A program made the position numbers and the translations under genes. Of a stretch of 64,000 bases of DNA, positions 1 through 61,689 are shown piece by piece; position 1 is the stretch's first letter, and every line of letters starts with the position of its first letter. The stretch lies in the sequence record MN871451.1; one strand, given 5' to 3'. The notes under the pieces are model-generated. The model did no database searches, was not told the origin of the DNA, and was given only the letters and a program-made list of their open reading frames with translations.

Positions 1-1305
1 TTAGGAAATACAACATACCCATCTGGTGGTTTTGTCCATACTCGCGAAGTAAAAATCACTGGCGTAAAAGTTGCGCAATTTTATGGCGGAATCAGGATTG
101 GTTCTACTGATACGTATTTAGATGTGGTGGAGAACTGCGCTTTTTATCGAAACGGATATGGTATCGTCACCGATGCAGGCGTGAACTGCGTTAACTCCGG
201 TGAGAACATGCGCTTCGTCAACTGCCTCATTGGTGACAACTATTTGGGCGGAGTCTACCGAAACGATACTGTCCATATGTTTAAATATTTTGGTTGTAGT
301 TTCGACTATAATACAAACGATGTTGTTTTTTATTCGCCAGTGAACATAGGTCAGGATACGTTGATCGAGTGTCACGTTGAAGGCTTCCGTTATTTAGCCA
401 ATTGCCCAACTCGTACAACAGGCGCTGGCGAAAATAATTTTAAAATGATCGGCGGAAATATCTTCATGTACGCGTTTGTTAATGATCCTTACCGTGGAGT
501 CAGGACAATTGGTTTTGCGACCACTACACGCACCGCTATCGACCTTGACAACGTAAACATTTTCTGTTACGGCCCGCACGTTAATAGCGCTTATGGGAGT
601 TACAAGGCGTACGATCCCACTAACCAGATCAAAATAAGAATACGTTACCCTTTACGCGGACAAACCTATCGTTTTCTGCCATCTTACGATACCTCTGACG
701 GTTACATTTTGAATAATACAGGGCTACTGTTTAATGGTACCGCTGGCGCGGCCTTACCGACTGCCAGGGCAATTGGACAGTGGTACGTAGTTGCTAACGG
801 TTCAACTATCGTCTATGGCTCTGCAGCAGATGCAGATTCGGATGGCCTGATCCCAGTGACAATTACTGCTACAAGTACAACTAACTCGGTTAACCTTCTC
901 TGGGGTACGCCAATTAATAACAGTAACAGTCAACAGAAATTTCATGTGTCCTGTTCAGTCAAAGCCGGTGCTGCAACTACTGGCAACGTTTACGTACGTG
1001 GTGTGTGTCGTTTAGTTTCATCTCAGACTTTTACTAATAACGCCACGACTAACGTAGTGTCAATGAGCGAAAATTATAGTGGATATGCCTTGGGTCCACA
1101 GCAAGATATTTTAAACTCACTAACAAAAACTGGCATCACCCTTACCGCAGACAATTACATGGGTACCTACATGCTTTCATGCGATACCGGTACGTCTCAG
1201 TACGGTTACGCTGGACTTAACTTTACCGGTTTCGTTGGTACCATCCAAGTTAAGCTGCCTGCGGTTTGGTTTTCCGATCAACATCCGACTTTAGGGTATT
1301 TGTGA
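1..1305 (+). CDS. Tailspike / tail fibre with beta-helix (5'-truncated by the window)
   Basis: The frame is open from base 1 (LGNTTYPSGG...) through the 124..1305 ORF. Beta-helix-like repeats (ENCAFYRNGYGI, SGENMRFVNCLIGDN) are followed by a T/S/N/G-rich C-terminal beta domain. First gene of an RBP cluster. Confidence 0.8.
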   Translation, partial: LGNTTYPSGGFVHTREVKITGVKVAQFYGGIRIGSTDTYLDVVENCAFYRNGYGIVTDAGVNCVNSGENMRFVNCLIGDNYLGGVYRNDTVHMFKYFGCSFDYNTNDVVFYSPVNIGQDTLIECHVEGFRYLANCPTRTTGAGENNFKMIGGNIFMYAFVNDPYRGVRTIGFATTTRTAIDLDNVNIFCYGPHVNSAYGSYKAYDPTNQIKIRIRYPLRGQTYRFLPSYDTSDGYILNNTGLLFNGTAGAALPTARAIGQWYVVANGSTIVYGSAADADSDGLIPVTITATSTTNSVNLLWGTPINNSNSQQKFHVSCSVKAGAATTGNVYVRGVCRLVSSQTFTNNATTNVVSMSENYSGYALGPQQDILNSLTKTGITLTADNYMGTYMLSCDTGTSQYGYAGLNFTGFVGTIQVKLPAVWFSDQHPTLGYL

Positions 1306-1499
1306 TGATTTATATCTACAAAGATACTGTGCGAGAGAACGTTTATTTTCTTTCCAGAATTGATTTGGGGGAGGCTATCGTTTTCTTTGAAGAAGTAGAA
1401 AACTATCAGGAAGCCGCACTTGGGTTCTTATCGGAAAAGGGTCTGGATGGTTCTTTTCTTTTAGAAGACAGGACTAGCGAAGACGATTCCGGTAGTTGA
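1305..1499 (+). CDS. Small acidic protein, possible tail fibre assembly helper
   Basis: ATG overlaps the upstream TGA (TGATG); 64 aa; followed by a terminator. Confidence 0.55.
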   Translation: MIYIYKDTVRENVYFLSRIDLGEAIVFFEEVENYQEAALGFLSEKGLDGSFLLEDRTSEDDSGS

Positions 1500-1523: not shown

Positions 1524-1557
1524 GAGTAGGGCCGATCGGCCCTACTCTTGTGTTTTT
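1524..1557 (+). terminator. Intrinsic terminator
   Basis: 10-bp stem GAGTAGGGCC-gatc-GGCCCTACTC followed by TTGTGTTTTT. Confidence 0.75.
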
Positions 1558-1606: not shown

Positions 1607-4285
1607 ATGGATAAGTCTAGTTTAAAAATTACTGAATTACCGGCGTTGTCGGTAGCCTCTGAGAATGGGTTTATTCCCATTGCCCAAGTTAAAGAAGAAA
1701 ACGACACGTATAAAACAACACTCCGTGCGTTACGTGAAAGTATCATGTTTGAGAACGCCTACTCGAGTACTGCGGCGGGTGTTTCGGCAACGGTTCCTGG
1801 CGATGTGTTCTTTGTTTACACTGACGATACTAAAGAGCATGTTCAAGGCTGGGTTAACAGTGCCGGTGGCGCCACCCCGTTATTGAATGCTAATAGTGAA
1901 CAAATCACTTACGGTACTTACGCGCTGTTGAATAAAGCTCTGAAGAATAAAGGGGCGATTGTACAGTGGGTTTATAATGGCGGGTTAAGTAACGGCGGGG
2001 AGCAAACCTTCACGGTTCCTTTAGCGGGGAATGTCGCAGTACAGGAAGTGTACGTCGATGGTTTGCGTCAGTTTAAAGACGTAGGTTTTGAATTAGTTGC
2101 TGGCGATATGTTGAGCTTTAAACTCGCTACACCAGTAAAAGAAAATCAAACCGTAGTAGCGATCTGTTTTGGTAGCGATGACATTGAGAAAGTCAACGAA
2201 GCGTTGCTCAGTCTATTTAGCGGGCCGACAGGTGCTGCAAATATCGGAATGGCAGCAGGCGGCACCGTAGAGGCCGCCATAGGCGCGCGGGTAGCTACTG
2301 CTGATTTAAGTAGCGTCTATGGAGCAGGGCTGGTCGGTACAGGGAATTACGCTGATCTTCGCAACTATACGGGTTATGCAAGCACGTTGTCTCTTTACGG
2401 TTACAGCACCGCCGGTGATGGTGGGGAAGGGATTTTCGATCGACAAAGCGTAGCTGGTAGTAAAACAGATGATGACTGCGTTCATCTTGTTGATAAATTA
2501 GGCAGACTTTGGAAACGTCGAATCAATGGGAACGTAGTGAAGCTCGCCTGGGCAGGCGTTAAGAGTTACGACCAAACCACCGCACCCCAAGATACCGCAT
2601 TTAAAAATGCATTGAAAGCAGCCGGACAACTCTCCTCTAACGGTTACCCGCAATCGATTATTACCGGGTTAGATAAAGGCGTGGTCTACCTTGCTCAGCG
2701 CCATTATATTCGCTGTGGAACATTCCCTGAATCTCTGTCGTGGATTCTTCCAACTAATTCCGGCGATCGTTTCGGTATTACGGGGCGTTATGCGTTAGAT
2801 CAAGGGGCGGGTTGGTTTGTGGTGCAAGCGAACCGTCCGCTGTTCGATATTGAGATTGACAACACCTCGCTGACATTCCAAGTCAATAATTACACCACTG
2901 CACAGATTGCTGGCTTGGTGGACACTAACTACGCGTTACGACTGGAAAGTATGGTTAACGCCCCGGATATTAAGATATCGGCAGGTGCTTACGCAGGAAC
3001 CGTACTTTACTCCTTAGGGAAGTCTAATTATACCGATGTAACAGCGAAGTGGCCAGATCTTACCGTCGTCCTACCGTCCATTCAGAATCTTGGTACATTA
3101 AGGATGAATAACAAAACAGTGGGTCGCGGGTTCTATCTTCGAAACACTGGTTCAGGCTTAGGTAAAGTTGAATACCTTTGGGAGCAGAATAATTCCCAAG
3201 CTTCCGTTCTGAAAGAAATGTACGATGTAGGACTAGAACATTACGAAGACTTTGTCCCACCGCTGCTGGCGACAGGTGGATTGATTATTGATACTTGCGG
3301 AACAGTAACGATAGGAAGTCTGTTAGTAGGTTCAGGCGGCGGTCCTCACGTCAGAATTTGGGATACTCCAGCGATCACTATCAACAAGATCTTTGGTGTC
3401 CAAGGCGGCCCGACTCTTGCCCAAACCCTCCCCGGCGCGTACTGTATTGAAATCTGTAACTCCCGTGTTTCAATCGGCCTTGTTAATGCGTATTATCCTG
3501 GCGAGTTTATTCGCATGGGCTACAATGCTTACGTTGGCATTGCCGATATTACGGGCTGGTATATGTCAAGAGTGGTCTACGTCACTAACGATACGACCAA
3601 GTTACAATATACCGGACAACGCATTGGTCAACCTAATGATACTGGTATTGTCACAATTTCGAAAGGGATCTTCTACAATCTCGATTACTACGCTGGAGGT
3701 TACGCAGCGCAACCTGTGTTCTACGTAGACGCAACTGTTCTTTACGGGAAAATGACGCTCGATAATATCGAATTCTATAATACCCATTCTGGGTGGACTA
3801 ACCTCACCGAAGATCAGATGTACATCGTCCGTGTAGACAGTCCTAATCCCAATTTCTTCTTTAGTACTCGGAACTGTAAATGGGACGATAATAATTTTAA
3901 TTACGTCATTTACCTTAAGCTACAAAGTCAACTGGCGTATTTCCAGAGCGCACAAACAAGCTACTCACGTATTCGATATGGGGACGGGACACAATCATCT
4001 TTTGGAATGCGGGACGCTACCCATGTTGATTTGACGACAACCGCACTACCATTAACAGGCGTTGACTACGTCTATAATTATCGTCGCGCGGGTAAGTACC
4101 ACGGTGATTTGACTGTCCCTTCTGGTGGTACATGCGTTATCAAAGTGAACGACCAAATATTGTACAATTATACAGCCGCGGGTACTTACCCGTTGAACTT
4201 GGTGCTGTATTACCAAGAAAGGGTCAACATTACGATCACCGGCGCAGTCACGCTAACGAACTCGACGTGGCGTTATACGGTATAA
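1607..4285 (+). CDS. Tailspike / depolymerase with a T4 gp10-like (XD3-type) docking module
   Basis: 892 aa. aa ~118-190 (WVYNGGLSNGGEQTFTV...VYVDGLRQFKDVGF...LATPVKENQTVVAI) resemble the XD3 module of CBA120 TSP4 / G7C gp66. Next come a typical tailspike N-domain (YSTAGDGGEGIF...DDDCVHLVDKLGRLWKR), a QDTAFKNALKAA beta-helix cap and a beta-helix body. Confidence 0.85.
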   Translation: MDKSSLKITELPALSVASENGFIPIAQVKEENDTYKTTLRALRESIMFENAYSSTAAGVSATVPGDVFFVYTDDTKEHVQGWVNSAGGATPLLNANSEQITYGTYALLNKALKNKGAIVQWVYNGGLSNGGEQTFTVPLAGNVAVQEVYVDGLRQFKDVGFELVAGDMLSFKLATPVKENQTVVAICFGSDDIEKVNEALLSLFSGPTGAANIGMAAGGTVEAAIGARVATADLSSVYGAGLVGTGNYADLRNYTGYASTLSLYGYSTAGDGGEGIFDRQSVAGSKTDDDCVHLVDKLGRLWKRRINGNVVKLAWAGVKSYDQTTAPQDTAFKNALKAAGQLSSNGYPQSIITGLDKGVVYLAQRHYIRCGTFPESLSWILPTNSGDRFGITGRYALDQGAGWFVVQANRPLFDIEIDNTSLTFQVNNYTTAQIAGLVDTNYALRLESMVNAPDIKISAGAYAGTVLYSLGKSNYTDVTAKWPDLTVVLPSIQNLGTLRMNNKTVGRGFYLRNTGSGLGKVEYLWEQNNSQASVLKEMYDVGLEHYEDFVPPLLATGGLIIDTCGTVTIGSLLVGSGGGPHVRIWDTPAITINKIFGVQGGPTLAQTLPGAYCIEICNSRVSIGLVNAYYPGEFIRMGYNAYVGIADITGWYMSRVVYVTNDTTKLQYTGQRIGQPNDTGIVTISKGIFYNLDYYAGGYAAQPVFYVDATVLYGKMTLDNIEFYNTHSGWTNLTEDQMYIVRVDSPNPNFFFSTRNCKWDDNNFNYVIYLKLQSQLAYFQSAQTSYSRIRYGDGTQSSFGMRDATHVDLTTTALPLTGVDYVYNYRRAGKYHGDLTVPSGGTCVIKVNDQILYNYTAAGTYPLNLVLYYQERVNITITGAVTLTNSTWRYTV

Positions 4286-4290
4286 TAACA

Positions 4291-4318
4291 CCAGAGAGGA
4301 ATCCCTCTCTGGCTTTCT
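4291..4318 (+). terminator. Hairpin / weak terminator
   Basis: CCAGAGAGG-aatc-CCTCTCTGG followed by CTTTCT. Confidence 0.5.
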
Positions 4319-4331
4319 ACAAGGAATAATC

Positions 4332-6155
4332 ATGTTAAATCGTTTAGTCCAACCCAACGGAAGTACAACAAAAGAGATCATTCTTCGTAACCTTTGTACT
4401 CTACTGGGATTAGAAACAAATCAAATAGCGGTACTCGAGACAAATGTCGACCTTTCCAATGTAAACGTGCTTTTTGATTTTAATACAAACAACTGTTTCG
4501 AAACAGTTTCAGCTACGGGAACGTTGCAAAGTTTCACCAGAAACCAAGATGGAACTTTAAACTTGGTAACGACAACAGGAAGTTTTAACGTTGGCCCATG
4601 GAGAGATCTTGGGGTAATTGATCAGGCTTTGAGCGTCGTTGAAAATTTGTTAGCGGAATTTAAGGGCGAAATTGATAATAAAGGAACAACTGACGGAAAC
4701 GGGCCCTCTGCTTCTGACGATATTTCCGTTGAAGATCAAATGAGCGTAAAAGGTCAATACGACGTCAACCCGGCCCCTGAAGATATTCAAGCGGTAGCTG
4801 GCATTAACTTCGGCGGAAAGAAAAATCTGGGTACCATTCTCATTGATAACCGCGGAAGACTGAAAACCTCAGCTACCGTTGACGGACACCGAACTGCAAG
4901 AAACATTCATGTACCTTTTGCTGAAGGCACAGGCTACTGGAGAGGTCCTTATCAAGACGTCATTGCGCGATTCCCTGTAGACGGCCAAGCGGATGATGAA
5001 ACCTCCCCAGCGATCATGTGGAGTTATGATAAAACCACAAATCTCCCAAGAATCTTTACTGTTTCTCCGCTCCAAACAGGGTTAGTCCCTTTCACTGACG
5101 CTGGGCGTTATCGTTGGAGTTGGGCGAACGGCACAGCTGTCAGAGAATTAGCTCAGCTTGATTCTATTGGACGGAGTCTGGCCAATTCTTACGACACCTA
5201 CTTCACCGTAGACAGTGCTAATGCTAACTTCATTAATTTCGCAACTATTGTAAACCCATCCAATCTTATCGGCGCACGTTTCTCCTGCTTAATTAATATT
5301 GGGAACGCGACAAATAGCAATGTTTTGACATATGTTCTCGATGTCAATTTACCAGATGTCGTTACCGCGTTTACTCAATACAACATTAATAAGTACGTTC
5401 GTTTTACAGGGATTGGTTCGGGTAAGATGTTGGATAATAGCGATGTAAAAAACGCCCTCCAACCGGTTATTGGTTTGGTTCAAGATACAACAACCGGAAC
5501 GGTGAATTTCTACCTAAGAACTCCGGCGCATTCCACTTATTTGAGTTCTACTTGCGTGAACTCCGGAAATGCAAACTTGATCACATGGAATTGGAATAAA
5601 TACATGGGCGGGTCACAATTGACGTCGCTCAGTGGTTCGACCCCTGCAGGGATTATTTGGGCGAACACCGCCTATACAGGGTCAAACTATCGTCGCGTGT
5701 TACTCAATGATGGTTCGAGTTTTGACGTACCAGAGGGTTATGCTGTATTGCGTTGTCATTACAACCACCCGGCTGATTCGGTTATCAATGCCGCTCCCTT
5801 TAAGAAATTCGTTTCTTCTTTTTGTTACGCCACCAATTTTGAAAGTGGTGTTGATTCATTAACATGCACAATACCGAGTCTTAATTTCACGATCACAGGT
5901 GCTGATCTTGCGACAGATATGCCTTGGCAGATAAGGCTACCTCAGATACCAAATAATGCTAACAGTTATCGATACGTTATTGGTGCAACGGATACAACTG
6001 CACATACATTTGCGTTTAGCGTTAGGCAAGTCCTTACTACTGCCACACTGAATACAACAACTAACGCGATCACGGTAACAGAAGCGTTGAGTAGCTCCCC
6101 AGTAGATCTGGGCCCGGCAGTTTGGATAGACGTGTTGGTAAAACTCGCAAATTAA
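4332..6155 (+). CDS. Tail fibre / tailspike with a Kuttervirus TSP-like N-terminal attachment domain
   Basis: N-terminus (QPNGSTTKEIILRNLCTLLGLETNQIAVLETNVDLSNVNVLFDFNTNNCF) aligns by eye with the CBA120 TSP N-terminal domain (QPRGSTS.E...IARNFG....V.Y......LSG..VIYD..TQ). The remainder is T/N/S/G-rich beta structure. Confidence 0.7.
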   Translation: MLNRLVQPNGSTTKEIILRNLCTLLGLETNQIAVLETNVDLSNVNVLFDFNTNNCFETVSATGTLQSFTRNQDGTLNLVTTTGSFNVGPWRDLGVIDQALSVVENLLAEFKGEIDNKGTTDGNGPSASDDISVEDQMSVKGQYDVNPAPEDIQAVAGINFGGKKNLGTILIDNRGRLKTSATVDGHRTARNIHVPFAEGTGYWRGPYQDVIARFPVDGQADDETSPAIMWSYDKTTNLPRIFTVSPLQTGLVPFTDAGRYRWSWANGTAVRELAQLDSIGRSLANSYDTYFTVDSANANFINFATIVNPSNLIGARFSCLINIGNATNSNVLTYVLDVNLPDVVTAFTQYNINKYVRFTGIGSGKMLDNSDVKNALQPVIGLVQDTTTGTVNFYLRTPAHSTYLSSTCVNSGNANLITWNWNKYMGGSQLTSLSGSTPAGIIWANTAYTGSNYRRVLLNDGSSFDVPEGYAVLRCHYNHPADSVINAAPFKKFVSSFCYATNFESGVDSLTCTIPSLNFTITGADLATDMPWQIRLPQIPNNANSYRYVIGATDTTAHTFAFSVRQVLTTATLNTTTNAITVTEALSSSPVDLGPAVWIDVLVKLAN

Positions 6156-6164
6156 GAGGTTTAG

Positions 6165-7892
6165 ATGAACTATTATTACATTGATCCTACCGTATCAGTG
6201 AACGGTACGGGGACAAAAGACTCACCATTTAAAACGTTTTCTGCATTGATTGCACAAGGTTTCAGTCACCCTTGTACTATTGCACTAAAAGCAGGGACAA
6301 CTATTTATGAGAACGTTAATTTTGGCTTAACCTCTTTGTACAACACAACGGGGACCATGTCTTATATTACAAGTTATGGGACTGGACCAAAACCAAAATG
6401 GATTAACACAGACTATTTTAAAGCTGCCACTGCGCTCGATGGGTATAGCTATCGTGCAATGCATTTGACCGCACGTAAGGTACAAAGCGTTACCGTCAGC
6501 GGAATAGAGTTTTATGCCCGAAACAATCTTGTTTCGGTCGATAATAACAGTAGCTGTTTTATTTGGTTTGAATTGCCACCGGTAACTGTGGAAACTGATG
6601 TCGACGTATGGATTGATAATTGTAAATTTATTAGCGATCCGATTGGCAGAAGCGGAAATCATAAAGACTATGATTCCGCCGTCAATATACGTTTAGATGG
6701 TGCCGCCACAAATAGGGCGAATGTTTTTGGTGTCAGAAATTCTTCATTTTTCAATGTAGCGAGATCCATTAACATCGTGGGGAACCATTGGAAAGCAGAT
6801 GATATTACTGACAACTCTAAAGGGACGTATTATTCTCGCGGGGTCAAAGTAGAGAATATTGAGATGACAGGAATCTCAAAAGGAGGCTGTCAGTTTGCTG
6901 GCGTGGAGTCTTTAAACTCCGCCTACGTTGTGGACAAATATCAGTCAGTCATGCGGAATATTACGTATTCAAAATACCGATGGGATAACGCGTTAGAGAA
7001 CACTGAAACGCTATATGCCGATGCGGGGTTTTGGACATGGCGTTGTAATCGAATCATGATTGAAAACATTTTCGGCGGTGGTATGCACCCTTCGGTTACC
7101 GATAATGAAATCATTGATTTTGATTACTGTACGTGGGATTCGGTGGCAAGAAATATCATTGGCTTCAACAATGGCGCCTCGATTCTATTTATGGGCAATT
7201 CTTCTACAAGTGTACAAGGTGGAGCACGAGCGGCGTACGCCCCCTATTCCGGCACTTATACACAGGCGCAATGGTTCTATGATCGAAGGAATGGCCAAGG
7301 TAACAATGTTGTTGAGTTTTCGTTCTTTTTCAATGACGGTATTCAACGATTACCATATCCTTCTTCCGGTTACGACTATTGCACCAACATTCGTTCTGGT
7401 AACATTAATTACAACAATGTGGTCAGGAACTGCGTCTTTATTGACACCGTTTCTCGAACCAGTAAATACCTCGCTAGTAATAATAATTTCCCGTTGTTAC
7501 AGGGTGAAGTTCCTCGATTAGTTATTCAGGACTCGGTCTATTACGCCAGATATAATGACGGTTTAAATATTCTTAAACCTATAACAGACACGGTCAATTA
7601 CAGTAAAGCAGCCACTGTTTTAACTAACGTTGTTGCTTTTTCACAAGTATGGTCAGCAGCTGACATTACAGCCGCCGCTGCCGCCGTGCAATTAGCAGGA
7701 ACGTGCACCAATGTTAATATTACCGATCCTAAAATCGGTTATATTCCATCTCAACCACCAGTGTCCGTTGCAAGTGCAAGAAAGATTAAAACTATGCCAG
7801 GTACTGTTTTGAAAGGGTCGGGATCTAATACTACCACCACCGATATCGATGGGAATTTTATTAATGATATTTGGTGGATGAAAATTACTTAA
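6165..7892 (+). CDS. Right-handed beta-helix glycan depolymerase (pectate lyase-like)
   Basis: Starts YYYIDPTVSVNGTGTKDSPFKT, a typical lyase/DUF1565-like start. Beta-helix rungs follow (IDNCKF, VRNSSF, VENIEM, MIENIF, VRNCVF). No obvious anchor domain. Confidence 0.75.
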   Translation: MNYYYIDPTVSVNGTGTKDSPFKTFSALIAQGFSHPCTIALKAGTTIYENVNFGLTSLYNTTGTMSYITSYGTGPKPKWINTDYFKAATALDGYSYRAMHLTARKVQSVTVSGIEFYARNNLVSVDNNSSCFIWFELPPVTVETDVDVWIDNCKFISDPIGRSGNHKDYDSAVNIRLDGAATNRANVFGVRNSSFFNVARSINIVGNHWKADDITDNSKGTYYSRGVKVENIEMTGISKGGCQFAGVESLNSAYVVDKYQSVMRNITYSKYRWDNALENTETLYADAGFWTWRCNRIMIENIFGGGMHPSVTDNEIIDFDYCTWDSVARNIIGFNNGASILFMGNSSTSVQGGARAAYAPYSGTYTQAQWFYDRRNGQGNNVVEFSFFFNDGIQRLPYPSSGYDYCTNIRSGNINYNNVVRNCVFIDTVSRTSKYLASNNNFPLLQGEVPRLVIQDSVYYARYNDGLNILKPITDTVNYSKAATVLTNVVAFSQVWSAADITAAAAAVQLAGTCTNVNITDPKIGYIPSQPPVSVASARKIKTMPGTVLKGSGSNTTTTDIDGNFINDIWWMKIT

Positions 7893-7929: not shown

Positions 7930-8050
7930 GAGGAAATAAGACACCCTCCGATTACTCCTATTTAACCGTTTCTCACAGTGCCGGTTAATAACGAGACATT
8001 CATTTTAATTTATAAGTTCAGGGACTTCGGTCCCTGTCTTATTTCACCTT
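7925..8050 (+). ncRNA. Candidate structured small RNA or regulatory leader
   Basis: Lies between the promoter and a UUCG hairpin/U-tract; no ATG-started ORF. Perfect 11-bp complement between 7933-7943 (GAAATAAGACA) and 8035-8045 (TGTCTTATTTC). Internal stems at 7962-7968/7982-7988 and 8021-8025/8030-8034. Confidence 0.55.
8019..8045 (+). terminator. Intrinsic terminator-like hairpin
   Basis: CAGGGAC-ttcg-GTCCCTG followed by TCTTATTT. Confidence 0.65.
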
Positions 8051-9460: not shown

Positions 9461-9541
9461 TCTCGCGCTTTTCTTTTTTGTCCCAAAACCTTTCTATGAC
9501 TCGTACTTTAACCGCCCCGTATAATGAGGGATGAATTGAAA

Positions 9542-11584
9542 ATGGTTGATTTAAAACAGACCCCAAAACAGATTGCCGTTGACCTGATTAACGAAGCAAA
9601 CGGGACAATGTACACGACTTCGTCAATCTCGTTAGGTACACCCGCTGTTAACACTACCGTTGTTAACGGTTTGAATACGACGATTAACGTCACTAACGGC
9701 TCGTCCCTGCAATCGCTCGGTGTAACATTACAGTATAATCGCCTGAGCTTTAAAACGCTATTGGCCCGACCCTACTGTCAACTGGAAGACTATACCCTTT
9801 CTCGTATCGTTGATTTAATTCCGTACCTGAACGAGAAATACCAACTCGCCCTAACTACCACTGATCTCGTAGACGGCCCGTATCGCCCAGATGACATTGC
9901 CACTGGCGTCAGAAAGATCACAGTCAGCGTGGCAGATAATCACCTCGTGTACACCGGTAGCGTAACTATCTATCTCGGCAAACAAGAGGCGGTTTACCAA
10001 TATTTCAATGCGCTACAGTTTACCGTGGGAAGTGACTATAACACCCTCAGCTTTTTAGGCGGTCACTGGAAACTGGCTGGGAAAGACATCGTTGACGTCA
10101 GCCGTACTATTTCGCAACGTTCCGGGTTAACTGCGCTTTATCTTTCTCCTACTGGGAATATTATCCCGGCAATCGACTATCACCCAAACAGCAAGAACAC
10201 GTTGATAGGACGCTTCCGCAATGGTCGTCTACTGGAGACCTTAGGAGTCAACGGTGAAACGTCTTACGACGCCACGGGTAACTTGCTTCCTAAAGTGCCG
10301 ATGTTACCGTCTCAGCTTGCAGTGATCCCTGAAACGTTAGGGTTAACAGCGTCGTTGAATGCGGGGACATTGACCTACTCTCTGGGTTTCGACGTCACCA
10401 GTAAACGTGCCGGTACAGGTACAGTGGTCTTCGTTGATGTCAAAGACGGTTCCGACACCAATGACGGTTCGACCGCAGCGACTGCGTTCAAAACCTTCCG
10501 TCGTGCGATAAACCGACTGCCTGCTGCCAGAGTTATTCGCGTAAAAGGTTACGCGGATCTTTACTACGATGCCGACTCTGGCTGGACACAAACTATTCGC
10601 CAACGTACGGTCGATATTATTGGTTACGGTGACGTTAACCCTACCTTTACCTCCACCCGTCAAAGTACTGATTGGTCAGGGTACGATGCCAACACCTGGT
10701 ACAGTAAAATCAGTGACATTGCTGCCGTGGTAGACAAAACGGTATACAGCGATGCCGGGTACGGGAGAATGACTGCTAAGACCTCGATTGCTGACTGTGC
10801 GAACACTCCGCACTCGTATTACATCGACAACACCAATAATCGGGTCTACGTTCGATTAACCGATAGCCGCAAGCCAGACAGTAATGTTTACCTGATTGCA
10901 AAAACGCTCTCAGGGTCAGTCGCCGATGCGGGTAACGTGTTCATGGAGAAATGTAATTTTGATCTCTCCTACAATGGCTTTATCGCAGACATGACCACAC
11001 CGAGAACCTACGGGTATCTGTACATGAACGCCTGTCGGTTCGGGTGGACGTTCAAGGGCCCATCCTTCGGAAGCTACGGTTATAACGTTGCACACCAAGA
11101 CTGTGTTGCACAATTTGGTTTCAGTGGCGGATTCAGTTACAACAGTGACCGTGTATTACCTGCGATGAACAGTAAGTATTGGATCGTGGAGAATAGAGCA
11201 ACAGTCAGCTACTGCGGTTTTGATAGTAACCATACCTCTGCGGCCTCCGGTCTCTCTGCGTACGGGACAATCCTGCGTCTGAACTCCGTATACAGCCATT
11301 GTGACGGTTCTCACGTCAAAGACTCCGGTGAAGGAACGTTCTCGGTGAATATCGCTTGCCAGTCCAATAGCGTGACGAACACGTTGAGTAATCTGGCGCA
11401 CTTTACCACCGGTGCGAATGCGACGACCGCTGCATCGGCTCAGTACTGGAGTTGTAAAGGGGATAACTCGGCGTTCTCGTTCATTCCAAACGGAGTAGGG
11501 AAAATCGCCCTGTTCGATACCGACATTGGCACTAAACCGGCCACACAGCTTCTGACCCCGTATCAATTCATTTATACCGCTTAA
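9542..11584 (+). CDS. Virion structural / tail fibre protein (phiKZ-like N-terminal domain + beta-helix)
   Basis: N-terminal pattern DLINEANG...NT...YNRL...DLIPYLNEKYQLAL...D typical of phiKZ-related tail proteins. Internal FVDVKDGSDTNDGSTAATAFKTFRRAI lyase-like start and beta-helix rungs. Confidence 0.75.
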   Translation: MVDLKQTPKQIAVDLINEANGTMYTTSSISLGTPAVNTTVVNGLNTTINVTNGSSLQSLGVTLQYNRLSFKTLLARPYCQLEDYTLSRIVDLIPYLNEKYQLALTTTDLVDGPYRPDDIATGVRKITVSVADNHLVYTGSVTIYLGKQEAVYQYFNALQFTVGSDYNTLSFLGGHWKLAGKDIVDVSRTISQRSGLTALYLSPTGNIIPAIDYHPNSKNTLIGRFRNGRLLETLGVNGETSYDATGNLLPKVPMLPSQLAVIPETLGLTASLNAGTLTYSLGFDVTSKRAGTGTVVFVDVKDGSDTNDGSTAATAFKTFRRAINRLPAARVIRVKGYADLYYDADSGWTQTIRQRTVDIIGYGDVNPTFTSTRQSTDWSGYDANTWYSKISDIAAVVDKTVYSDAGYGRMTAKTSIADCANTPHSYYIDNTNNRVYVRLTDSRKPDSNVYLIAKTLSGSVADAGNVFMEKCNFDLSYNGFIADMTTPRTYGYLYMNACRFGWTFKGPSFGSYGYNVAHQDCVAQFGFSGGFSYNSDRVLPAMNSKYWIVENRATVSYCGFDSNHTSAASGLSAYGTILRLNSVYSHCDGSHVKDSGEGTFSVNIACQSNSVTNTLSNLAHFTTGANATTAASAQYWSCKGDNSAFSFIPNGVGKIALFDTDIGTKPATQLLTPYQFIYTA

Positions 11585-11600
11585 CTGGGGCGAATTTAAA

Positions 11601-13670
11601 ATGACAGATTTCTCGTTAAAAAGTAAAGCGCTTCTGGTTCGTCAGCTGAACACGCAGTACGGTGCCTTTTTTAAAGAAAGCGATTTGGATTTCATCAACC
11701 TCACTGCCCTGACGACCGGGAATTTTAACACGCGTATCACCGCGGTAGCGACCGATGCAGGTGACTACCGTGATTCAGCAGTCTTTGATTACAACCGGGT
11801 CAATCTCAATAGAGTCCTGACCGAGCCCGTGGTGTTCATGTCTACTGCCGGAATATTCACGGCCGAAGATATCGTTACCCGTTTGAATACGTTGTACGGC
11901 CTACAGCTGGACATGACCGATATCAAACAGGAAGTCTTCATTCCCACTGCGTTGACGACCACAATCGGTGTCTTTACACTGAAAACCGTTGCTACTTCAT
12001 TGATGTACATCGGGACACTCGAAGTTTATTTCGGTCAAGAAACCACGATTCGCGATTGGCTCCGCACCCCGTATCAACTTTATCAGTCAGACGGTAAAAC
12101 CTTTACGCTCTCTGGGAAGAGTCGAATTAACGGCGAAAACTTTGTGGTTGGGAAACAAGGGAGTTTCTTACCGACTGCCGCGAATACTGGGATTATTTTA
12201 GGGAATGACGGATCGTTGTCAATGACTCAAAGTTCGCTACAATCGGGTAATACAGTGGCGCGTTTCCGCGCTGGGCAATTACTGGAACTGACCGGTCCTT
12301 CTTACGAGACCAGTTACGACAGTGCAAATAACTGTTTGCCGGTAGTTCCTAAACTCCCTGCGGTTTTTGATCCACTCGCTGCGGTCTTCCCTTACGAGGG
12401 AGCGTTGGCCCAGGGACTGATGCGATTCTCAACCGACTTTGATCTGAGCGAATGGTACTTCCCCTACGGGATGGTCTACTACGTTGACTCTGATCTCGGT
12501 GCAGACGGGAATGATGGAAGTGAAGCTAACCCACTGAAAACTCTTAACGCTGCAATTGATAAATCGCCTATTGCCACCAGTATCGTCGTGAAGGGCTCTA
12601 AACCGTTCTTCGTTCAACGTACAGTGAATGACCGTAAGATCGGTATCTATGGCACCGGTGGCACCGTACCGACCTTTACGGGCGATCTGGGGATCACTAA
12701 CTGGTCACTTTACTCCGACTCTAACGTTGTCTATCAATATTTAGCAACGGGTCTAAGTATCGCCGGTGTCTTTGATTACGGTACGCTAGACAGTAACGGA
12801 TTACCTAAACGCTTAGTGGAAGTAGACGGCCCTGCTGCGGTAGTGGCCACAGTAGGAAGCTACTGCGTGACGTCCACTGCGATTATTGTTCAGACGTCGA
12901 ATAGCCGTAAACCTGACAGTAACGTTAAAGTCGTTGTGAAGAACACGGGGCTGAATTTCACTGGGAACAGCACAATTTACGTCTCCAATGTGAAAGTCTC
13001 TGACACCGACAATGGTTTAGGTGCTGAGTCTGTGGCGATCAATGCGAAACCGTCTTTATGGTTGAAGGGCGTGGAGGTTACCGGAACCTGTTCAACGGCG
13101 TGCCTTAACAACTACGGGGCTGAGGTCTTCTCTCAAGATTGCCATTTCAGTAACGGCGGGACTTACGGTACCTATCACGGCAGTGACCGTCAGACAATTC
13201 CGTTGGGGGTACAAGGCACGTTCCTCGAAGTCAGTTGCGTATCCGAGAATCACTTCGGTTCGGGTAATGGACAAAAACGTGGGTCGTTAGTAGGGCCGGG
13301 TGTAACAGGGATTCGATTCAAATCGACTTACCGAAATGTAGACGGTTACCCTATCGAAGAGTACGGACTGAATACCTTCGTGGCTCACCTCGAAACGATC
13401 GCCAGCGGCAACCAAAGCACAGACAGTATCAAAGGTGCATTATATGTCGTCGGGAAAGATACGGTAGGTTCTAACGTTTACGGTAGAGGGGCGTCTTACT
13501 TCTACAGCTGCAGTTACGACAACGGCGTGAAGTCCAGCTTCCAAACGTACGGAAGCGGCGAGATTCATCTCTACAATACGCCGATCGGTGCGGTAGCACA
13601 GTACAGCAAACCTAACCCTTACCGGTTCATTTACACCAGTCGTCAGATTACTGATTACGAAACCGCTTAA
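11601..13670 (+). CDS. Virion structural / tail fibre protein, paralog of 9542..11584
   Basis: Same architecture: YNRVNL...DIVTRLNTLYGLQL, RFRAGQLLEL.G...TSYD, YYVDSDLGADGNDGSEANPLKTLNAAI, and the C-terminal PYRFIY motif. Confidence 0.75.
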   Translation: MTDFSLKSKALLVRQLNTQYGAFFKESDLDFINLTALTTGNFNTRITAVATDAGDYRDSAVFDYNRVNLNRVLTEPVVFMSTAGIFTAEDIVTRLNTLYGLQLDMTDIKQEVFIPTALTTTIGVFTLKTVATSLMYIGTLEVYFGQETTIRDWLRTPYQLYQSDGKTFTLSGKSRINGENFVVGKQGSFLPTAANTGIILGNDGSLSMTQSSLQSGNTVARFRAGQLLELTGPSYETSYDSANNCLPVVPKLPAVFDPLAAVFPYEGALAQGLMRFSTDFDLSEWYFPYGMVYYVDSDLGADGNDGSEANPLKTLNAAIDKSPIATSIVVKGSKPFFVQRTVNDRKIGIYGTGGTVPTFTGDLGITNWSLYSDSNVVYQYLATGLSIAGVFDYGTLDSNGLPKRLVEVDGPAAVVATVGSYCVTSTAIIVQTSNSRKPDSNVKVVVKNTGLNFTGNSTIYVSNVKVSDTDNGLGAESVAINAKPSLWLKGVEVTGTCSTACLNNYGAEVFSQDCHFSNGGTYGTYHGSDRQTIPLGVQGTFLEVSCVSENHFGSGNGQKRGSLVGPGVTGIRFKSTYRNVDGYPIEEYGLNTFVAHLETIASGNQSTDSIKGALYVVGKDTVGSNVYGRGASYFYSCSYDNGVKSSFQTYGSGEIHLYNTPIGAVAQYSKPNPYRFIYTSRQITDYETA

Positions 13671-19832: not shown

Positions 19833-21044
19833 ATGTTTGACTTAGGCGTAGTAATCGGTAAATTCGCACCCCTTACGTTGGGGCACATCAACTTAATCAC
19901 AGAGGCTGCTGTGCAGTCTAAGCATGTCCTCGTCATTCTTTCCCACGACCAACGTTGGCTGGATAAACAATCGCCACGAGACCAAAAGGTACTCAATTTC
20001 AAGAATCGTCTGCGCTGGCTGCAACAGACTTACGCGGATACAGAGCACGTCACGATCGATTTCATTGATGAGGCTTCTGTACCGGAATACCCGAACGGCT
20101 GGAAAGAATACGCTGCTCTGCTCGGCGCTAAGATTTTCAACGAGGCAGGTAGACTGGCAGCTAATCACAGTCAGGCGCAGAGCATTGCTATTTTCAGTAG
20201 CGAGCTGGATTACGATGAAAAATACAAAACGCACCTCGGTTTTGTAGAACACGTTATCGTTGACAGTAACCGTACCCGCGTCCCCATCTCCGCCACGATG
20301 ATCCGTGAAAACCTTTACGACCATTGGGAATATCTCCCGAGCATTGTCCGTAAAGATTATTGTTTGCGGGTGGTCGTATTAGGCGTTGAGAGTTCTGGGA
20401 AAAGTTCCCTCGTCAAGAACCTCGCCAAACTCTACAATACCAGCTGGGTTGAAGAGTACGGCCGTACGTACTGTGAAACGGTCTTAGCGGGTTCGGAAGC
20501 GACTCTCCGTAGTTCTGACTACCCGTTGATTGCGTATCGTCACAAAGAGCTGGAGGAGGAAGCATTACGTACTTCTAATCGACTCTGTTTCATCGATACG
20601 AACGCCTTCATTACGGAATATTACCATCGGCTGTACGAGGGTAAACCTAACCCTATTGTTTCTGCTATCGCGGCTGAAGAGCATTACGATCTCGTGTTGA
20701 TTCTTTCGCCGGAAGTACCATGGGTCGATGATGGTCTGCGGCTGAATCCTGACCGCGAGAAAACAGAGAGTCTCTTCCAACAAATGCTTTGGGAATTTAA
20801 AAACCAAACACCATGGGGGCGCACTGTATTCATTAAAGGGGACTCTTACAAAGGTCGTTTAGATCAATCACGTGAAGCGGTTGATAACTTGTTATCCGGT
20901 AACGGCACTGCCGGCCAGAGCGCTCCAGAAATTCCAAATAAGTTCCCTCCTGCTGCCAGCGGTGGTAACTTTGATAAAGATTGGAGTATGGTAGAAAGCA
21001 TCGAGGCTGGTTCTCATCAGAACCCCGCTGATTGGGGTGGATGA
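19833..21044 (+). CDS. nadR: NadR-type bifunctional NMN adenylyltransferase / ribosylnicotinamide kinase (no HTH repressor domain)
   Basis: IGKFAPLTLGH ((H/T)xGH motif), ISATMIRENLYDHWEYLP, Walker A GVESSGKSS, EEYGRTY, FIDTN, WVDDGLR. Confidence 0.95.
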   Translation: MFDLGVVIGKFAPLTLGHINLITEAAVQSKHVLVILSHDQRWLDKQSPRDQKVLNFKNRLRWLQQTYADTEHVTIDFIDEASVPEYPNGWKEYAALLGAKIFNEAGRLAANHSQAQSIAIFSSELDYDEKYKTHLGFVEHVIVDSNRTRVPISATMIRENLYDHWEYLPSIVRKDYCLRVVVLGVESSGKSSLVKNLAKLYNTSWVEEYGRTYCETVLAGSEATLRSSDYPLIAYRHKELEEEALRTSNRLCFIDTNAFITEYYHRLYEGKPNPIVSAIAAEEHYDLVLILSPEVPWVDDGLRLNPDREKTESLFQQMLWEFKNQTPWGRTVFIKGDSYKGRLDQSREAVDNLLSGNGTAGQSAPEIPNKFPPAASGGNFDKDWSMVESIEAGSHQNPADWGG

Positions 21045-21048
21045 TTTC

Positions 21049-21192
21049 ATGACTCAACAACGGCGTACGCAACGCAAAATAAAGCGGATGTTAGGCGATA
21101 ACTATCGCTTTTACCACGCTGTATTTGGCGACAAACTTAATCTGAGATCCGCAAGTTACATCTCAACTTTTCTCGAAGGATTTAATAGATGA
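21049..21192 (+). CDS. Small basic protein, 47 aa (not in the ORF track)
   Basis: MTQQRRTQRKIKRMLGDNYRF...; fills the nadR-pnuC gap exactly; its stop overlaps the pnuC ATG (ATGA). Confidence 0.55.
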   Translation: MTQQRRTQRKIKRMLGDNYRFYHAVFGDKLNLRSASYISTFLEGFNR

Positions 21193-21878
21193 ACTCATTG
21201 GTAATGAAAACTTTCACTGACTTTGCGCACTGGAAGAAAGTCGAATACTTTTGGCTGATCGTAGCGTTAATCGTCGTCGGATTAGGGAGCTGGCAAGCCA
21301 GTCCGTTAGAATTCACGGCAGCGCTGACTAACGTCGTCTGCGTGATTCTGGTGGCGAAGGGTCGCGTCTCTAATTATTACTGGGGGACGATTGGCGTAAT
21401 TACCTACGGTATTGTTTCGTACAATACCGGCCTTTATGCCAATGCGGCGTTGAACGCTATTTACCTTCCCATGCAGTTTATCGGTATTTATTACTGGACG
21501 AAAGACCTGGGCAAAACTCCAGCCAAAGCTGACGTAGCGGTTAAAACGATCACTTTACGTGACGTGATAACTTATCTGGTTGTTGGGGTTATCTTCTGGT
21601 ATGGCCTGACCGAATACCTGAAAACTACGCAGGATCCGTTTCCTGCATTAGACGCGTTCTGCTTAGTCGCATCGCTCATCGCCATGTGGATGATGATCAA
21701 GCAGCAGCCAGAGCAATGGATTCTCTGGATCATTATCAACTGCGTCACGATTTATCTGTGGGTGATCCCGGCGCTTAATCAACCGGGTTCATGGGCGCAG
21801 GTGGCACAGTGGGCAGTATTCTTGATGAATGCTTTCTACGGCCTTTGGAAGTGGTATATCACCAAAACCAACAAATAA
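21189..21878 (+). CDS. pnuC: PnuC nicotinamide riboside transporter
   Basis: Multi-TM protein; NVVCVILVAKGRVSNYYWG, MQFIGIYYW, DPFPALDAF, EQWILWIIIN; adjacent to nadR. Confidence 0.93.
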   Translation: MNSLVMKTFTDFAHWKKVEYFWLIVALIVVGLGSWQASPLEFTAALTNVVCVILVAKGRVSNYYWGTIGVITYGIVSYNTGLYANAALNAIYLPMQFIGIYYWTKDLGKTPAKADVAVKTITLRDVITYLVVGVIFWYGLTEYLKTTQDPFPALDAFCLVASLIAMWMMIKQQPEQWILWIIINCVTIYLWVIPALNQPGSWAQVAQWAVFLMNAFYGLWKWYITKTNK

Positions 21879-59382: not shown

Positions 59383-61689
59383 TTAAGCTATCTCATAATA
59401 CCCCGCTACATCGTAGTAAATATAAGGCGCATTTCCAGCACTAGTGTTCAGGTTTGCCGCGTTAAACGTGGTTGCCGAGACTCCGCTTAAAATTTTTAAG
59501 GTCGTATTTGTAATACTTGCCTTTAAATTCATTGCATCAGTCGCGCCGATAATGTTTTTAACCTCGATACTTGAAATCGAATTACCGCCACTTGCAACAC
59601 TTACAGGTAAGTTACCTATAGTTATTGGACCAGAAGGGTAAGCCAACGCGCCGTTTTTAAATAGTTTTAGGGAGAAGAAGAAAATTTTACCTACAATCTT
59701 ACCTGTACCTACAGCAGTTTCTAAATTAGTATATTCAACCCCATTTACAAAAAGCGTTGGGATAAAACTTATTTTTCCAGCATAGACAAAATCCTCGTAA
59801 GAACCCAACGAACCATGAGGCAGTATCGCACGACTTTCATTAATACTACCTATTATCCGATAACCGTTTTCATCAAAAATTGAAACTAAAAACGGATCTC
59901 TGGTTTGTTTTGCTCCTTTACTAGGATATGTAATAGAAACCGAAAGCGGGTTATTCGTCCCTATCCCATTGGCAGAATATGCAGCTAGTTGACAGTTTGA
60001 CGAGAGTACCACCTTGTCAGAATTGAACCCGTGTGCAACTAAATAACCGATACCATAACCTTCGGGTCTATAAACATCTCGATTATCAACACCAAAGAAA
60101 TTTCCAGTCGCAGAAGAACCCAAAGAACGTTGAATTAAACCAACGCCCTCTAGATAAATATTATTGATAGAACAAAGATACGTCACTATCCCATTCTCGT
60201 TATTAAAGAAAAACGGTGCTCTATGAGGGCCTAAAACTTTGACTGATTTAATTTCGTAAGAAGCAGCTGCGCGACCGTAGCGAGAATAAACAGTAAGGAC
60301 TCTCCCTACTACCCCACGATAAGGGCTCATTTTTGAAGCTGTCCCGCCGGTATTATTAGATAATCTCCCGCCTGCCGAAGTTTTTGCACTATTGGCGTTT
60401 TTGTAGAAATAAGTATCAAAATAAGTATCAACACTCTTATGTCGATCACCGAAAGCTTGATCAACTTGCCCATAAACAACAAAATCAACTTTATAAAAAT
60501 CGGTCCAACCTAATGACCATACGTCTGTCGCTGGATACGGCGGTAAATACGGGTTATTGTTACTATCATTTCTTTGCGTCCACCAACCACCGTGAATATC
60601 TCCTGTGTAGTTACCTGAGAAATGTAAGGTTCCGGCAGAACAACGTTCAATGCCCTGAAATATACCGGCTATGGCGCAATTAGAAACTTTAATTTGTTCA
60701 AAGGATTGTTCTGCCGTTCCTTCTACTACTCTACCTATAAAGAAATTAGAAATATTGATATTAATTAAATTATATATTACAGTCCCTTGATATTTACTCC
60801 CAGCAGTAAAAAGAATACCAATCGGCTGATCGGTATCTATAGGAGACGAATTTATTGACCAATTCCCTACAAATCCGTCTTTATTTACATCTGATCCGCG
60901 AATAGTTACTCTACCAGTTAATTTAAGGCACACTGGTTGCGTGTAAATAGTCTCCGGTGAGAGATTACTGTCCCCGTTATTTACCCATCCCGGATAAACA
61001 GTACCGTCATCTCCAGGAAGCGTTAAAGTAGTAGTTGTGCTGAAAATATTATAAAAGCCAGAAACAGTAATTTCACTCGCCGAGGCTTTTGATGCGTAAT
61101 CAAATGCTTTTTGGACATAATTTGTCGAATCAAAAGTAGGTGATATTGAATTCGGGATTGCACCAAACATTGTTAAATCTAGTGATAATCTCTCTACGCG
61201 CTGCCAATAAAATCCGTTTCCTGCCGCGATTACACCACCGTCATCTGTAGCTGATCCGGTGAAACCCACAAATTCCCCTCCACCTAAAGCTTGACCTTCA
61301 TGCCAACTGCGCAAATAAATTTTTTGCCCTGTTCTGAAAACCGGCAGCGCGCGGAGAGCGGCAAAACTCCCTATTTCTTCAACAAAATTTACAGGTATAT
61401 TCTGTTGAATTTTCCCGTAGGCGTCTAAAATCGTCACGCTGTAATGCGTTTCTACCGAAAGAGTAACTGTGTTACCTAAATTATCAACAGGTATCCCATT
61501 GCTGTTTAGAGCAATGGGTTGTGAAATAGTAGATACCGTACCGTCTGTTTTCATTGCGGTTACTGTCAATTGATTACTTAGCACCGTGGGGTCAGTATTA
61601 ATCTTGCCGATATACAAAGAGCCTGAGTTGGCGGCTCTCCCGCTATCGATCAATCTAAACTGATTGGATGGCATCGAAATAATATTCAT
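59383..61689 (-). CDS. Tailspike with a P22/Sf6/HK620-type head-binding domain
   Basis: IISMPSNQF...LYIGKINTDP...NQL.V....DG....ISQPIALNSNG.PV...HYSVTILDAYG matches the P22-like N-terminal domain. Followed by FAALRAL...LRSWHEG..LGGGEF...DDGGVI...WQR and LTMFGA...VQKAFDYA, then a beta-helix. Confidence 0.88.
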   Translation of the reverse strand: MNIISMPSNQFRLIDSGRAANSGSLYIGKINTDPTVLSNQLTVTAMKTDGTVSTISQPIALNSNGIPVDNLGNTVTLSVETHYSVTILDAYGKIQQNIPVNFVEEIGSFAALRALPVFRTGQKIYLRSWHEGQALGGGEFVGFTGSATDDGGVIAAGNGFYWQRVERLSLDLTMFGAIPNSISPTFDSTNYVQKAFDYASKASASEITVSGFYNIFSTTTTLTLPGDDGTVYPGWVNNGDSNLSPETIYTQPVCLKLTGRVTIRGSDVNKDGFVGNWSINSSPIDTDQPIGILFTAGSKYQGTVIYNLININISNFFIGRVVEGTAEQSFEQIKVSNCAIAGIFQGIERCSAGTLHFSGNYTGDIHGGWWTQRNDSNNNPYLPPYPATDVWSLGWTDFYKVDFVVYGQVDQAFGDRHKSVDTYFDTYFYKNANSAKTSAGGRLSNNTGGTASKMSPYRGVVGRVLTVYSRYGRAAASYEIKSVKVLGPHRAPFFFNNENGIVTYLCSINNIYLEGVGLIQRSLGSSATGNFFGVDNRDVYRPEGYGIGYLVAHGFNSDKVVLSSNCQLAAYSANGIGTNNPLSVSITYPSKGAKQTRDPFLVSIFDENGYRIIGSINESRAILPHGSLGSYEDFVYAGKISFIPTLFVNGVEYTNLETAVGTGKIVGKIFFFSLKLFKNGALAYPSGPITIGNLPVSVASGGNSISSIEVKNIIGATDAMNLKASITNTTLKILSGVSATTFNAANLNTSAGNAPYIYYDVAGYYEIA

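Follow-up and report, generated by a model that had tools for sequence, protein, structure and literature searches.

Nucleotides 1607–7892 of the 64,000-nucleotide stretch of DNA analysed here (the window) contain three genes that together form a receptor-binding unit of a Klebsiella jumbo myophage related to ΦKp24. The window is nucleotides 186001–250000 of GenBank MN871451.1, "Serratia phage KpYy_2_45" (100% identity, megablast). The first gene specifies an 892 amino acid (aa) protein, residues 113–190 of which are, by sequence homology and predicted fold, a T4 gp10-type XD domain. Residues 1–92 of the 607-aa product of the second gene are, by homology and predicted fold, a D1/TD1 head at the extreme N-terminus. 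From homology and by analogy with characterised spikes, we propose that the 607-aa protein docks by its D1 head on the XD trimer of the 892-aa spike, a reading to which we assign a probability of about 0.72.

Megablast returned seven near-identical records (six sister phages, KpLz-2_45, genus Siatvirus, being counted twice) and, at greater distance, ΦKp24 (vB_KpM_FBKp24, genus Maaswegvirus), LPKP23, MJ359 and Centimanus. With these last four, similarity at the DNA level is confined to window nucleotides 1–2205 and stops ~200 codons inside the 892-aa gene, a pattern typical of a conserved N-terminal adaptor fused to a body that can be exchanged. The N-terminal 258 residues are 63–87% identical across the clade and stand beside unrelated bodies, the XD domain being the best-conserved part.

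The 892-residue protein

The gene and its domains are as follows:
1607..4285, + strand: 892-aa receptor-binding protein, proposed secondary hub (ATG at 1607, stop at 4285)
1607..1942, + strand: module A (aa 1–112), clade-specific N-terminal attachment module (phrog_27731 at aa 2–107; paralogues; phmmer)
1943..2176, + strand: XD domain (aa 113–190), T4 gp10-type β-jellyroll, presumed docking platform (profile, AlphaFold, Foldseek)
2177..2293, + strand: helical neck/linker (aa ~191–229) between adaptor region and body (predicted helices)
2294..4285, + strand: receptor-binding body (aa 230–892), exchangeable, presumed capsule depolymerase (relatives; unrelated to the gp301 body of ΦKp24)

A first-pass annotation, made from the sequence alone, had placed the limits of this gene and of the next (4332–6155, 607 aa) where we find them. 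Single-sequence searches of Pfam, NCBIfam and the PDB gave nothing useful for these two proteins or for the 575-aa product of the third gene, and profiles were required. PHROGs divide the N-terminus of the 892-aa protein into phrog_27731 (residues 2–107) and phrog_12242 ("tail protein", residues 113–187). An exhaustive phmmer search of 1.84 billion representatives with residues 1–230 revealed many proteins that match residues 2–110 alone, always at their own N-terminus, and many others that match residues ~113–190 alone, often as two tandem copies; these are thus two modules with independent distributions. The first-pass annotation had also recognised, at nucleotides ~1958–2176 (residues ~118–190), a T4 gp10-like XD3 docking module of the kind carried by CBA120 TSP4 and G7C gp66. 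These coordinates fall in a real, separately distributed domain (phrog_12242, phmmer and profile matches), and its identity is confirmed by profile and fold matches to XD3 of CBA120 TSP4-N and to the gp66-like B2 gp49.

A profile of the close family of the 892-aa protein (A1) matched the PDB solely over profile positions 115–190, with E-values from 2e-17 to 3.4e-7. The matches were to B2 gp49 (9D83/9D84; two tandem copies, E=2e-17), the "type I tail fiber" of a Klebsiella podophage (7XY1; E=5.5e-12), Moo19 gp82 (9D80; E=2.9e-10) and CBA120 TSP4 residues 1–335 (7REJ/7RFO; chain positions 265–331, E=3.4e-7). In TSP4-N, XD1 comprises residues 80–178, and the N250 construct is without XD3, which follows residue 250 (PMC8825819); by these limits chain positions 265–331 are XD3. 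The strong PDB matches of a broader profile (A2) arise from G7C-like sequences inside its alignment and were set aside as evidence.

An AlphaFold2 model of residues 1–258, calculated from 103 sequences, had a mean predicted local distance difference test score (pLDDT) of 80, with 89–97 over residues 121–190 and 68 over residues 111–120; helices were predicted in the neck at 190–205, 209–212 and 221–231. The top Foldseek match in the PDB was 9d84_B, the gp49 fragment in the gp48/gp49 complex (template modelling score 0.80, 2.1 Å over 69 columns, 33% identity, probability 1.00), and TSP4-N (7rfo) was matched at 2.1–2.3 Å over 68–72 columns with 30–32% identity, again with probability 1.00. In BFVD, the matches were to ΦKp24 gp301, other jumbo-phage fibres, G7C-like N4 phages, the RBP1 proteins of KP34/KP32-type podophages and Ackermannviridae spikes.

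The XD domain lies N-terminal to the neck and the receptor-binding body. The latter shows 44–46% identity over 98–100% of its length to tail fibre/spike proteins of ~44–51 kb Klebsiella phages and of Ackermannviridae, and on the basis of these sequence relatives it is presumed to be a capsule depolymerase. Several phages with relatives of this body were isolated on ATCC 700603 and one is named with K53, a hint at capsule specificity. Module A had no sequence relative in the PDB by single-sequence or profile searches. Several chains of head-to-tail/portal complexes were among the Foldseek matches of the model of residues 1–258; as the output does not give the aligned part of the model, they led to no conclusion on the fold of module A.

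The 607-residue protein

The features of the second gene are:
4332..6155, + strand: 607-aa fibre with D1 head and RaK2 gp526-like body, presumed docked branch (ATG at 4332, stop at 6155)
4332..4607, + strand: D1/TD1 head (aa 1–92), presumed plug for the XD platform (profile, hhalign, AlphaFold, Foldseek)
4608..4676, + strand: long helix (aa 93–115), likely a trimeric coiled-coil neck (the helix is predicted, the coiled coil presumed)
4719..6155, + strand: RaK2 gp526-like all-β body (aa ~130–607; relatives, WceF match)

The motif by which this N-terminus had first been recognised is present as originally written, with QPNGSTTKE at residues 7–15, LLG at 24–26, IA.L at 32–35 and DLSN..VLFD at 40–49. 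The full length is spanned by phrog_20024 ("tail protein", E=1e-51). A tblastn search with residues 1–110 retrieved 83 phage records at 25–37% identity, and all of the matches inspected were N-termini of fibre or spike genes. The phages concerned included Ackermannviridae (Menlow, KpS110, 0507-KN2-1, phiMAM1, Det7), K64-1, RaK2 and ~75 kb phages including the Schitoviridae member GADU21.

An initial D1 profile (A3) matched CBA120 TSP3 and TSP1, B2 gp48 and G7C gp63.1 with E-values of 4e-30 to 2e-20; this result is partly circular because Det7, whose head closely matches TSP3, was in the profile. A D1-head profile of seven jumbo-phage sequences only, with no Ackermannviridae sequence (A4), matched TSP3 (6NW9/5W6F; E=3.4e-10), TSP1 (4OJ5; E=2.1e-9), G7C gp63.1 (4QNL; E=4.2e-9), B2 gp48 (9D84_A; E=3.2e-8) and D1 of TSP4 (E=4e-4). 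When compared with an Ackermannviridae-only profile by hhalign, the D1 head scored 99.6% (E=7e-25). The earlier proposal that this gene begins with the attachment domain of the secondary TSPs of CBA120 is borne out, residues 1–92 matching TSP3, TSP1, G7C gp63.1 (4QNL) and B2 gp48.

The full-length AlphaFold model has a pLDDT of 62 overall, residues 10–90 being confident (73–90). Its head consists of a helix at 12–25 and six strands between 32 and 87, followed by the long helix at 93–115. Foldseek matched this head to TSP1 (4OJ5_A; 2.1 Å over 78 columns) and TSP3 (5W6F; 2.4 Å over 74 columns), the range being 2.1–2.7 Å and the probability 1.00.

Word-indexed searches yielded few relatives of the 607-aa protein and for this reason the body model is of low confidence, with a pLDDT of ~35–70 except at aa 510–607. 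At that confidence, Foldseek matched the model to WceF (6TGF) with a probability of 0.97 and found no β-helix spike or depolymerase domain over the body. Relatives of the body, at 23–58% identity, occur in 33 further phage records, including 0507-KN2-1 orf98 ("RaK2_00526"), Miami gp092 (RaK2_00526-like), Magnus gp195 and ΦKp24 gp312; direct similarity to RaK2 gp526 itself covers ~100 residues. The docked protein had been predicted to be a tailspike. The head part of this prediction stands, but the body is a RaK2 gp526-like fibre in which no depolymerase domain was detected.

Were the two motifs short, low-information strings matched by chance, the genes would be ordinary unbranched tailspikes, and it would be in keeping with this that neither protein, searched as a single sequence, found anything in the PDB or Pfam. 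Profile, profile-profile and fold comparisons concur, with E-values down to 2e-17, which refutes that explanation and leaves it a negligible probability. Foldseek gave a probability of 1.00 for both predicted domains.

Proposed docking of the 607-residue fibre on the 892-residue spike

In the proposed arrangement, the 892-aa protein would trimerise and its three XD domains would form a flat, trimeric surface. On this surface the D1 head of the 607-aa protein, itself a trimer, would dock, and the 607-aa fibre would be carried as a branch of the 892-aa spike, which would in turn be anchored by module A either on the baseplate or on a more proximal fibre. Each branch would add one surface-glycan specificity, and the unit would constitute one side branch of the hyperbranched tail fibre of this phage.

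Biochemical work on CBA120 and G7C has demonstrated that XD3 binds D1-headed partners (PMC8825819, PMC11414711), and 9D84 is the solved complex of B2 gp48 with a gp49 fragment (PMC11654681). The latter is the closest structural counterpart of our platform and, for the plug, a significant match in sequence. We infer that the 607-aa head binds an XD3-type partner because of the gene adjacency and this homologous complex.

In this genome, D1 heads occur in exactly two proteins (721 and 607 aa). Both are specified directly after a gene that carries module A and XD, giving the pairs 933-aa/721-aa and 892-aa/607-aa. The same two pairs are found in KpLz-2_45, MJ359 and ΦKp24; in ΦKp24 a small gene, gp305, separates gp306 from gp304. 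Centimanus and LPKP23 have a D1-headed gene after their gp301-type gene, the N-terminus of which matches module A. The platform-then-plug pair of gp301 type was thus present in all five related genomes checked, and the gap within it measures 45–55 nucleotides in six of six genomes while the bodies differ. In MJ359 (L002 14315–18585) two D1-headed genes follow the gp301-like gene, the second having a tandem D1-D2.

The first-pass annotation had pictured a hub with docked spikes forming a branched, multi-specificity structure. This agrees with the cryo-electron tomography (cryo-ET) and HHpred results for ΦKp24 and with the conserved adjacency; the 892-aa protein is, however, a secondary hub and not the root, carrying as it does the clade-specific attachment module that six paralogues also have. 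That annotation had spoken of parts borrowed from unrelated families; what the sequences show is that the modules are shared across families.

Several observations weigh against the docking of the 607-aa head on the 892-aa XD trimer. The XD domain is ~90% identical to that of ΦKp24 and the adjacent D1 heads are only 25–30% identical, so that either the interface rests on few residues or the partners are not strictly cognate; the invariant D1 residues are M1, Q7, P8, G10, G63, T80 and G83. XD copies outnumber D1 heads in every clade genome examined, and adjacency therefore points to cognate pairs without proving them. Here, two clear copies and a third, weak copy are found in the 933-aa (gp306-like) protein, against a single copy in the 892-aa protein and a partial one in the 791-aa protein. 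The curated Pfam model for such heads (PF18668, Tail_spike_N, TSP1/Gp66 N-terminal domain) misses the 607-aa head, no Pfam family reaching E≤1 over residues 1–143; a 27%-identical relative (KWBSE43-6) bears the Tail_spike_N name in UniProt. T4 gp10 was absent among the profile and fold matches of the XD domain, which is consequently "gp10-like" only indirectly, through TSP4. Finally, the XD domain could mediate a contact between hubs, since XD2 and XD3 are homologous and published HHpred results aligned residues 111–189 of ΦKp24 gp301 with residues 11–82 of TSP2 at 98.9% (PMC9700779).

In such a hub-to-hub arrangement, the 892-aa XD would act like XD2 of CBA120 TSP2 and contact an XD of the 933-aa primary fibre, which would tie the 892-aa spike into the complex, and the 607-aa head would dock instead on one of the two or three XD copies of the 933-aa protein. 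Contacts of this type, XD2 with XD2, join TSP2 to TSP4 in Ackermannviridae (PMC11414711), and the surplus of XD copies over D1 heads, including the spare copies of the 933-aa protein, speaks for it. The sole CBA120 match of profile A1 is nevertheless positions 265–331 of TSP4, that is XD3, the XD2 region of TSP4 and TSP2 being unmatched at E-values up to 10. Moreover, the 892-aa protein has its own attachment module A, common to six fibres without a clear XD, so that an XD contact is not needed for attachment, and the D1-headed gene always comes directly after the XD gene. We consider this arrangement unlikely.

Far less probable again is that XD and D1 arrived as relics with recombined fibre genes and now dock nothing, each fibre binding the baseplate alone. 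The divergence of the D1 heads in this slot would fit a loss of function. The conservation of XD, the best-preserved part across the clade, argues for selection, and in four phage groups the D1 heads have kept both their fold and the invariant motif at their N-terminus. The D1-headed protein is without any other recognisable attachment module, and the fibres of ΦKp24 are visibly branched. Docking of the 607-aa head on the 892-aa XD trimer accordingly remains the preferred reading.

Module A and the wider receptor-binding protein cluster

The receptor-binding protein (RBP) cluster, as seen in the window together with 31 kb of upstream sequence (L014), contains 14 large RBP genes. Module A is common to seven of the products (664, 791, 695, 1115, 677, 933 and 892 aa), with pairwise identities of 29–51% and pairwise BLAST E-values of 6e-10 to 2e-28. 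The copy in the 892-aa gene lies at window 1607–1942 and the others are located as follows:
L014 12846–28044: six further module A genes

By tblastn, module A was found in just 23 records, all from ~270–307 kb jumbo phages of Klebsiella, Serratia and Pectobacterium, at 3–9 copies per genome (6–9 in all but one record). An initial hidden Markov model of module A, cut from A2, was contaminated by XD rows and over-extended; it was rebuilt from clean seeds and reliance was placed on the independent pairwise BLAST.

The two-gene cassette

The third gene of the unit is:
6165..7892, + strand: 575-aa RaK2 gp525-like protein without an N-terminal adaptor (phrog_16942, full length)

The phrog_16942 match covers the whole 575-aa protein (E=3e-80), which is 31% identical to 0507-KN2-1 orf99 ("RaK2_00525"). 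Relatives occur in 43 phage records and adjoin a gp526-like gene in at least nine phages. The adjacent pair is present in Magnus, KpS110, 0507-KN2-1 (Ackermannviridae), Webervirus 1513, Miami, RaK2 and, as gp312-gp313, in ΦKp24. The intergenic gap ranges from a few to a few hundred bases, and the second gene never has a recognisable adaptor. Neither Pfam nor the PDB offered a match from which a fold could be assigned to the 575-aa protein and its relatives. ΦKp24 gp313 has been predicted to be a β-helix glycosidase/lyase with no more than a short N-terminal peptide (PMC9700779). By analogy with gp313, and in line with a note in the annotation of Magnus, the 575-aa protein is presumed to be the depolymerase partner of the 607-aa fibre. 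It has no adaptor and probably rides on that gp526-like fibre, which may reasonably be seen as its carrier.

The genome holds a paralogue of each member of this pair:
L014 11173–14840, − strand: second cassette copy, 664-aa and 558-aa genes

Identity between the bodies of the 607-aa and 664-aa proteins is 26% (E=8e-27), and the 575-aa protein is 30% identical to the 558-aa product of the gene that follows the 664-aa gene. With paralogous bodies and paralogous following genes, these are two copies of one cassette, one D1-headed and one with module A.

Taken together, a relay of three tiers may be envisaged, tentatively and as a rather doubtful extension of the docking proposal. Module A would fix seven fibres to a common acceptor, two of these would bear XD for D1-headed fibres, and a non-enzymatic gp526-like carrier would recruit a gp525-like protein, the pair being a self-contained mobile cassette. 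If so, the cassette would move among jumbo phages, Ackermannviridae, Webervirus-type siphophages and others while swapping only the head domain of its first gene. This genome offers a natural example of one two-gene receptor-binding cassette with two different adaptors.

Transcription of the unit

Two terminator-like hairpins flank the three genes:
1524..1547, + strand: terminator-like hairpin upstream of the 892-aa gene (10-bp stem with 7 GC pairs, T-rich tail)
8019..8036, + strand: first terminator-like hairpin 3' of the three genes

No terminator-like site was found on the + strand between 1547 and 8019, which fits a single transcription unit. A terminator is annotated at the equivalent position upstream of gp301 in ΦKp24, and the hairpin at 1524..1547 is likely to be the upstream boundary. 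Promoter-like matches across the unit were no more frequent than expected by chance.

Other receptor-binding genes and features of the genome

A 64-codon open reading frame (ORF) at window 1305–1499, the start of which overlaps the stop of the upstream RBP gene, occupies the position of gp302 in ΦKp24. Small ORFs trail other RBP genes in these clusters as well, which suggests that they are possible assembly factors. The upstream RBP gene itself specifies a 672-aa protein (L014 30288–32306; its C-terminal part is window 124–1305) in which the body is preceded by only ~25 residues and an adaptor cannot be recognised. Upstream of window 1519, KpLz-2_45 departs from the present sequence, to which it is otherwise 99.9% identical; one RBP slot has thus been replaced between near-identical phages.

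Adjacent paralogues of 686 and 689 aa (window 9524–13670) have an N-terminal DUF7941 (PF25613) and are the counterparts of ΦKp24 gp295 and gp294, both among the 14 fibres of that phage. A 768-aa RBP is specified outside the main cluster, on the − strand at window 59383–61689. Its residues 3–95 match the head-binding domain of the P22/Sf6 tailspikes (1LKT, 7SG7), a third adaptor type in the same phage, and its body gave matches to structures of KN1-specific depolymerases (9M4C/9M4D; E=1e-60). Downstream of the RBP cluster, NadR-like and PnuC-like genes (NAD salvage) lie at window 19833–21878, in the positions at which they are annotated in ΦKp24 and KpLz-2_45.

Record MN871451.1 is a 302-kb genome which carries no annotation and is flagged UNVERIFIED_ORG. 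It is titled "Serratia phage", yet the recorded host is Klebsiella pneumoniae and the close relatives are all Klebsiella phages.

Significance

Branched fibres explain how one phage recognises many capsule types and bear on the host range of Klebsiella phages. This principle was already established by ΦKp24, and the branched-docking reading, while correct, is the published view of this phage group; current understanding stands, and what the present work contributes is annotation and detail. It provides domain-level assignments for a GenBank genome that carries no annotation, and the modules fall into two classes, clade-specific (module A) and shared across families (XD, D1). What is new, namely the family of module A and a cassette present with two different heads, is modest.

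Comparison with known branched systems

ΦKp24 is the closest of these systems. It has 14 receptor-binding proteins, 11 of them with confirmed depolymerase activity (PMC13385381), and its branched fibres have been seen by cryo-ET as a 14-protein hyperbranched tail-fibre system (PMC9700779). The cluster described here is orthologous and syntenic, with ~14 RBP genes among which are gp306-like and gp301-like fibres that bear XD. The 892-aa protein is the positional and N-terminal homologue of gp301, with 78% identity over residues 1–234; similarity fades near aa 210–234 and the C-termini are unrelated. Gp301 was placed among the "Group 2" fibres and assigned a T4gp10-like domain spanning residues 61–194 (Ouyang et al. 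2022, PMC9700779), its HHpred probabilities being 98.9% to CBA120 gp163 and 99.8% to gp165 (TSP2 and TSP4, respectively; PMC9700779). At the same genome position and in the same gene order, the next gene in both phages starts with a homologous D1 head, gp300 being the counterpart of the 607-aa gene (26% identity over the shared head, E=2e-8). The two clusters also have in common a primary fibre of gp306 type that bears two or three XD copies, a pair like gp312-gp313 and two DUF7941 proteins. The differences lie in the bodies: that of gp301 is unrelated to the 892-aa body, and the slot of gp300, a K25-specific β-helix depolymerase, is filled here by the gp526-like fibre plus the extra 575-aa gene. 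The published ΦKp24 model ranks fibres by N-terminal length and describes neither a shared module A nor a pairing of XD and D1 genes.

With CBA120 the unit shares an XD domain that matches XD3 of TSP4 in sequence and fold and a D1 head that matches TSP1 and TSP3, the platform being N-terminal to one spike and the head at the extreme N-terminus of the next. The 892-aa protein differs in having one XD, not two or three, and module A in place of a TSP4-type anchor and XD1; no D1/D2 tandem follows its XD, identity is 19–32%, and the phage that carries the unit is a jumbo phage of ~300 kb not assigned to the Ackermannviridae.

The Schitoviridae pairs G7C gp66/gp63.1 and B2 gp49/gp48 gave the best platform matches of all and significant plug matches. 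These are podophages, in which gp49 and gp66 carry two XD copies on a podovirus tail and gp48 and gp63.1 are SGNH-type esterase spikes.

In RaK2 and K64-1 (Alcyoneusvirus), the 607-aa protein finds the same head, the WceF match and its RaK2_00526-like relatives, and XD is likewise spread over several fibres. RaK2 gp526 is described as a D1-headed protein whose non-enzymatic body contains a WceF-like β-sandwich and lacks a depolymerase domain (PMC10253068). RaK2 differs in that its anchor, gp528, has five XD copies and another anchor.

In KP32-type phages, the branching domain of RBP1 is the docking site of the second RBP (PMC13352976), and the XD domain together with the start of the neck matches 7XY1 positions 188–304 (E=5.5e-12). 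There, the second protein is attached through a short conserved peptide and not through a folded D1 head, and by analogy peptide docking of this type may apply to the adaptor-less 672-, 575- and 558-aa proteins.

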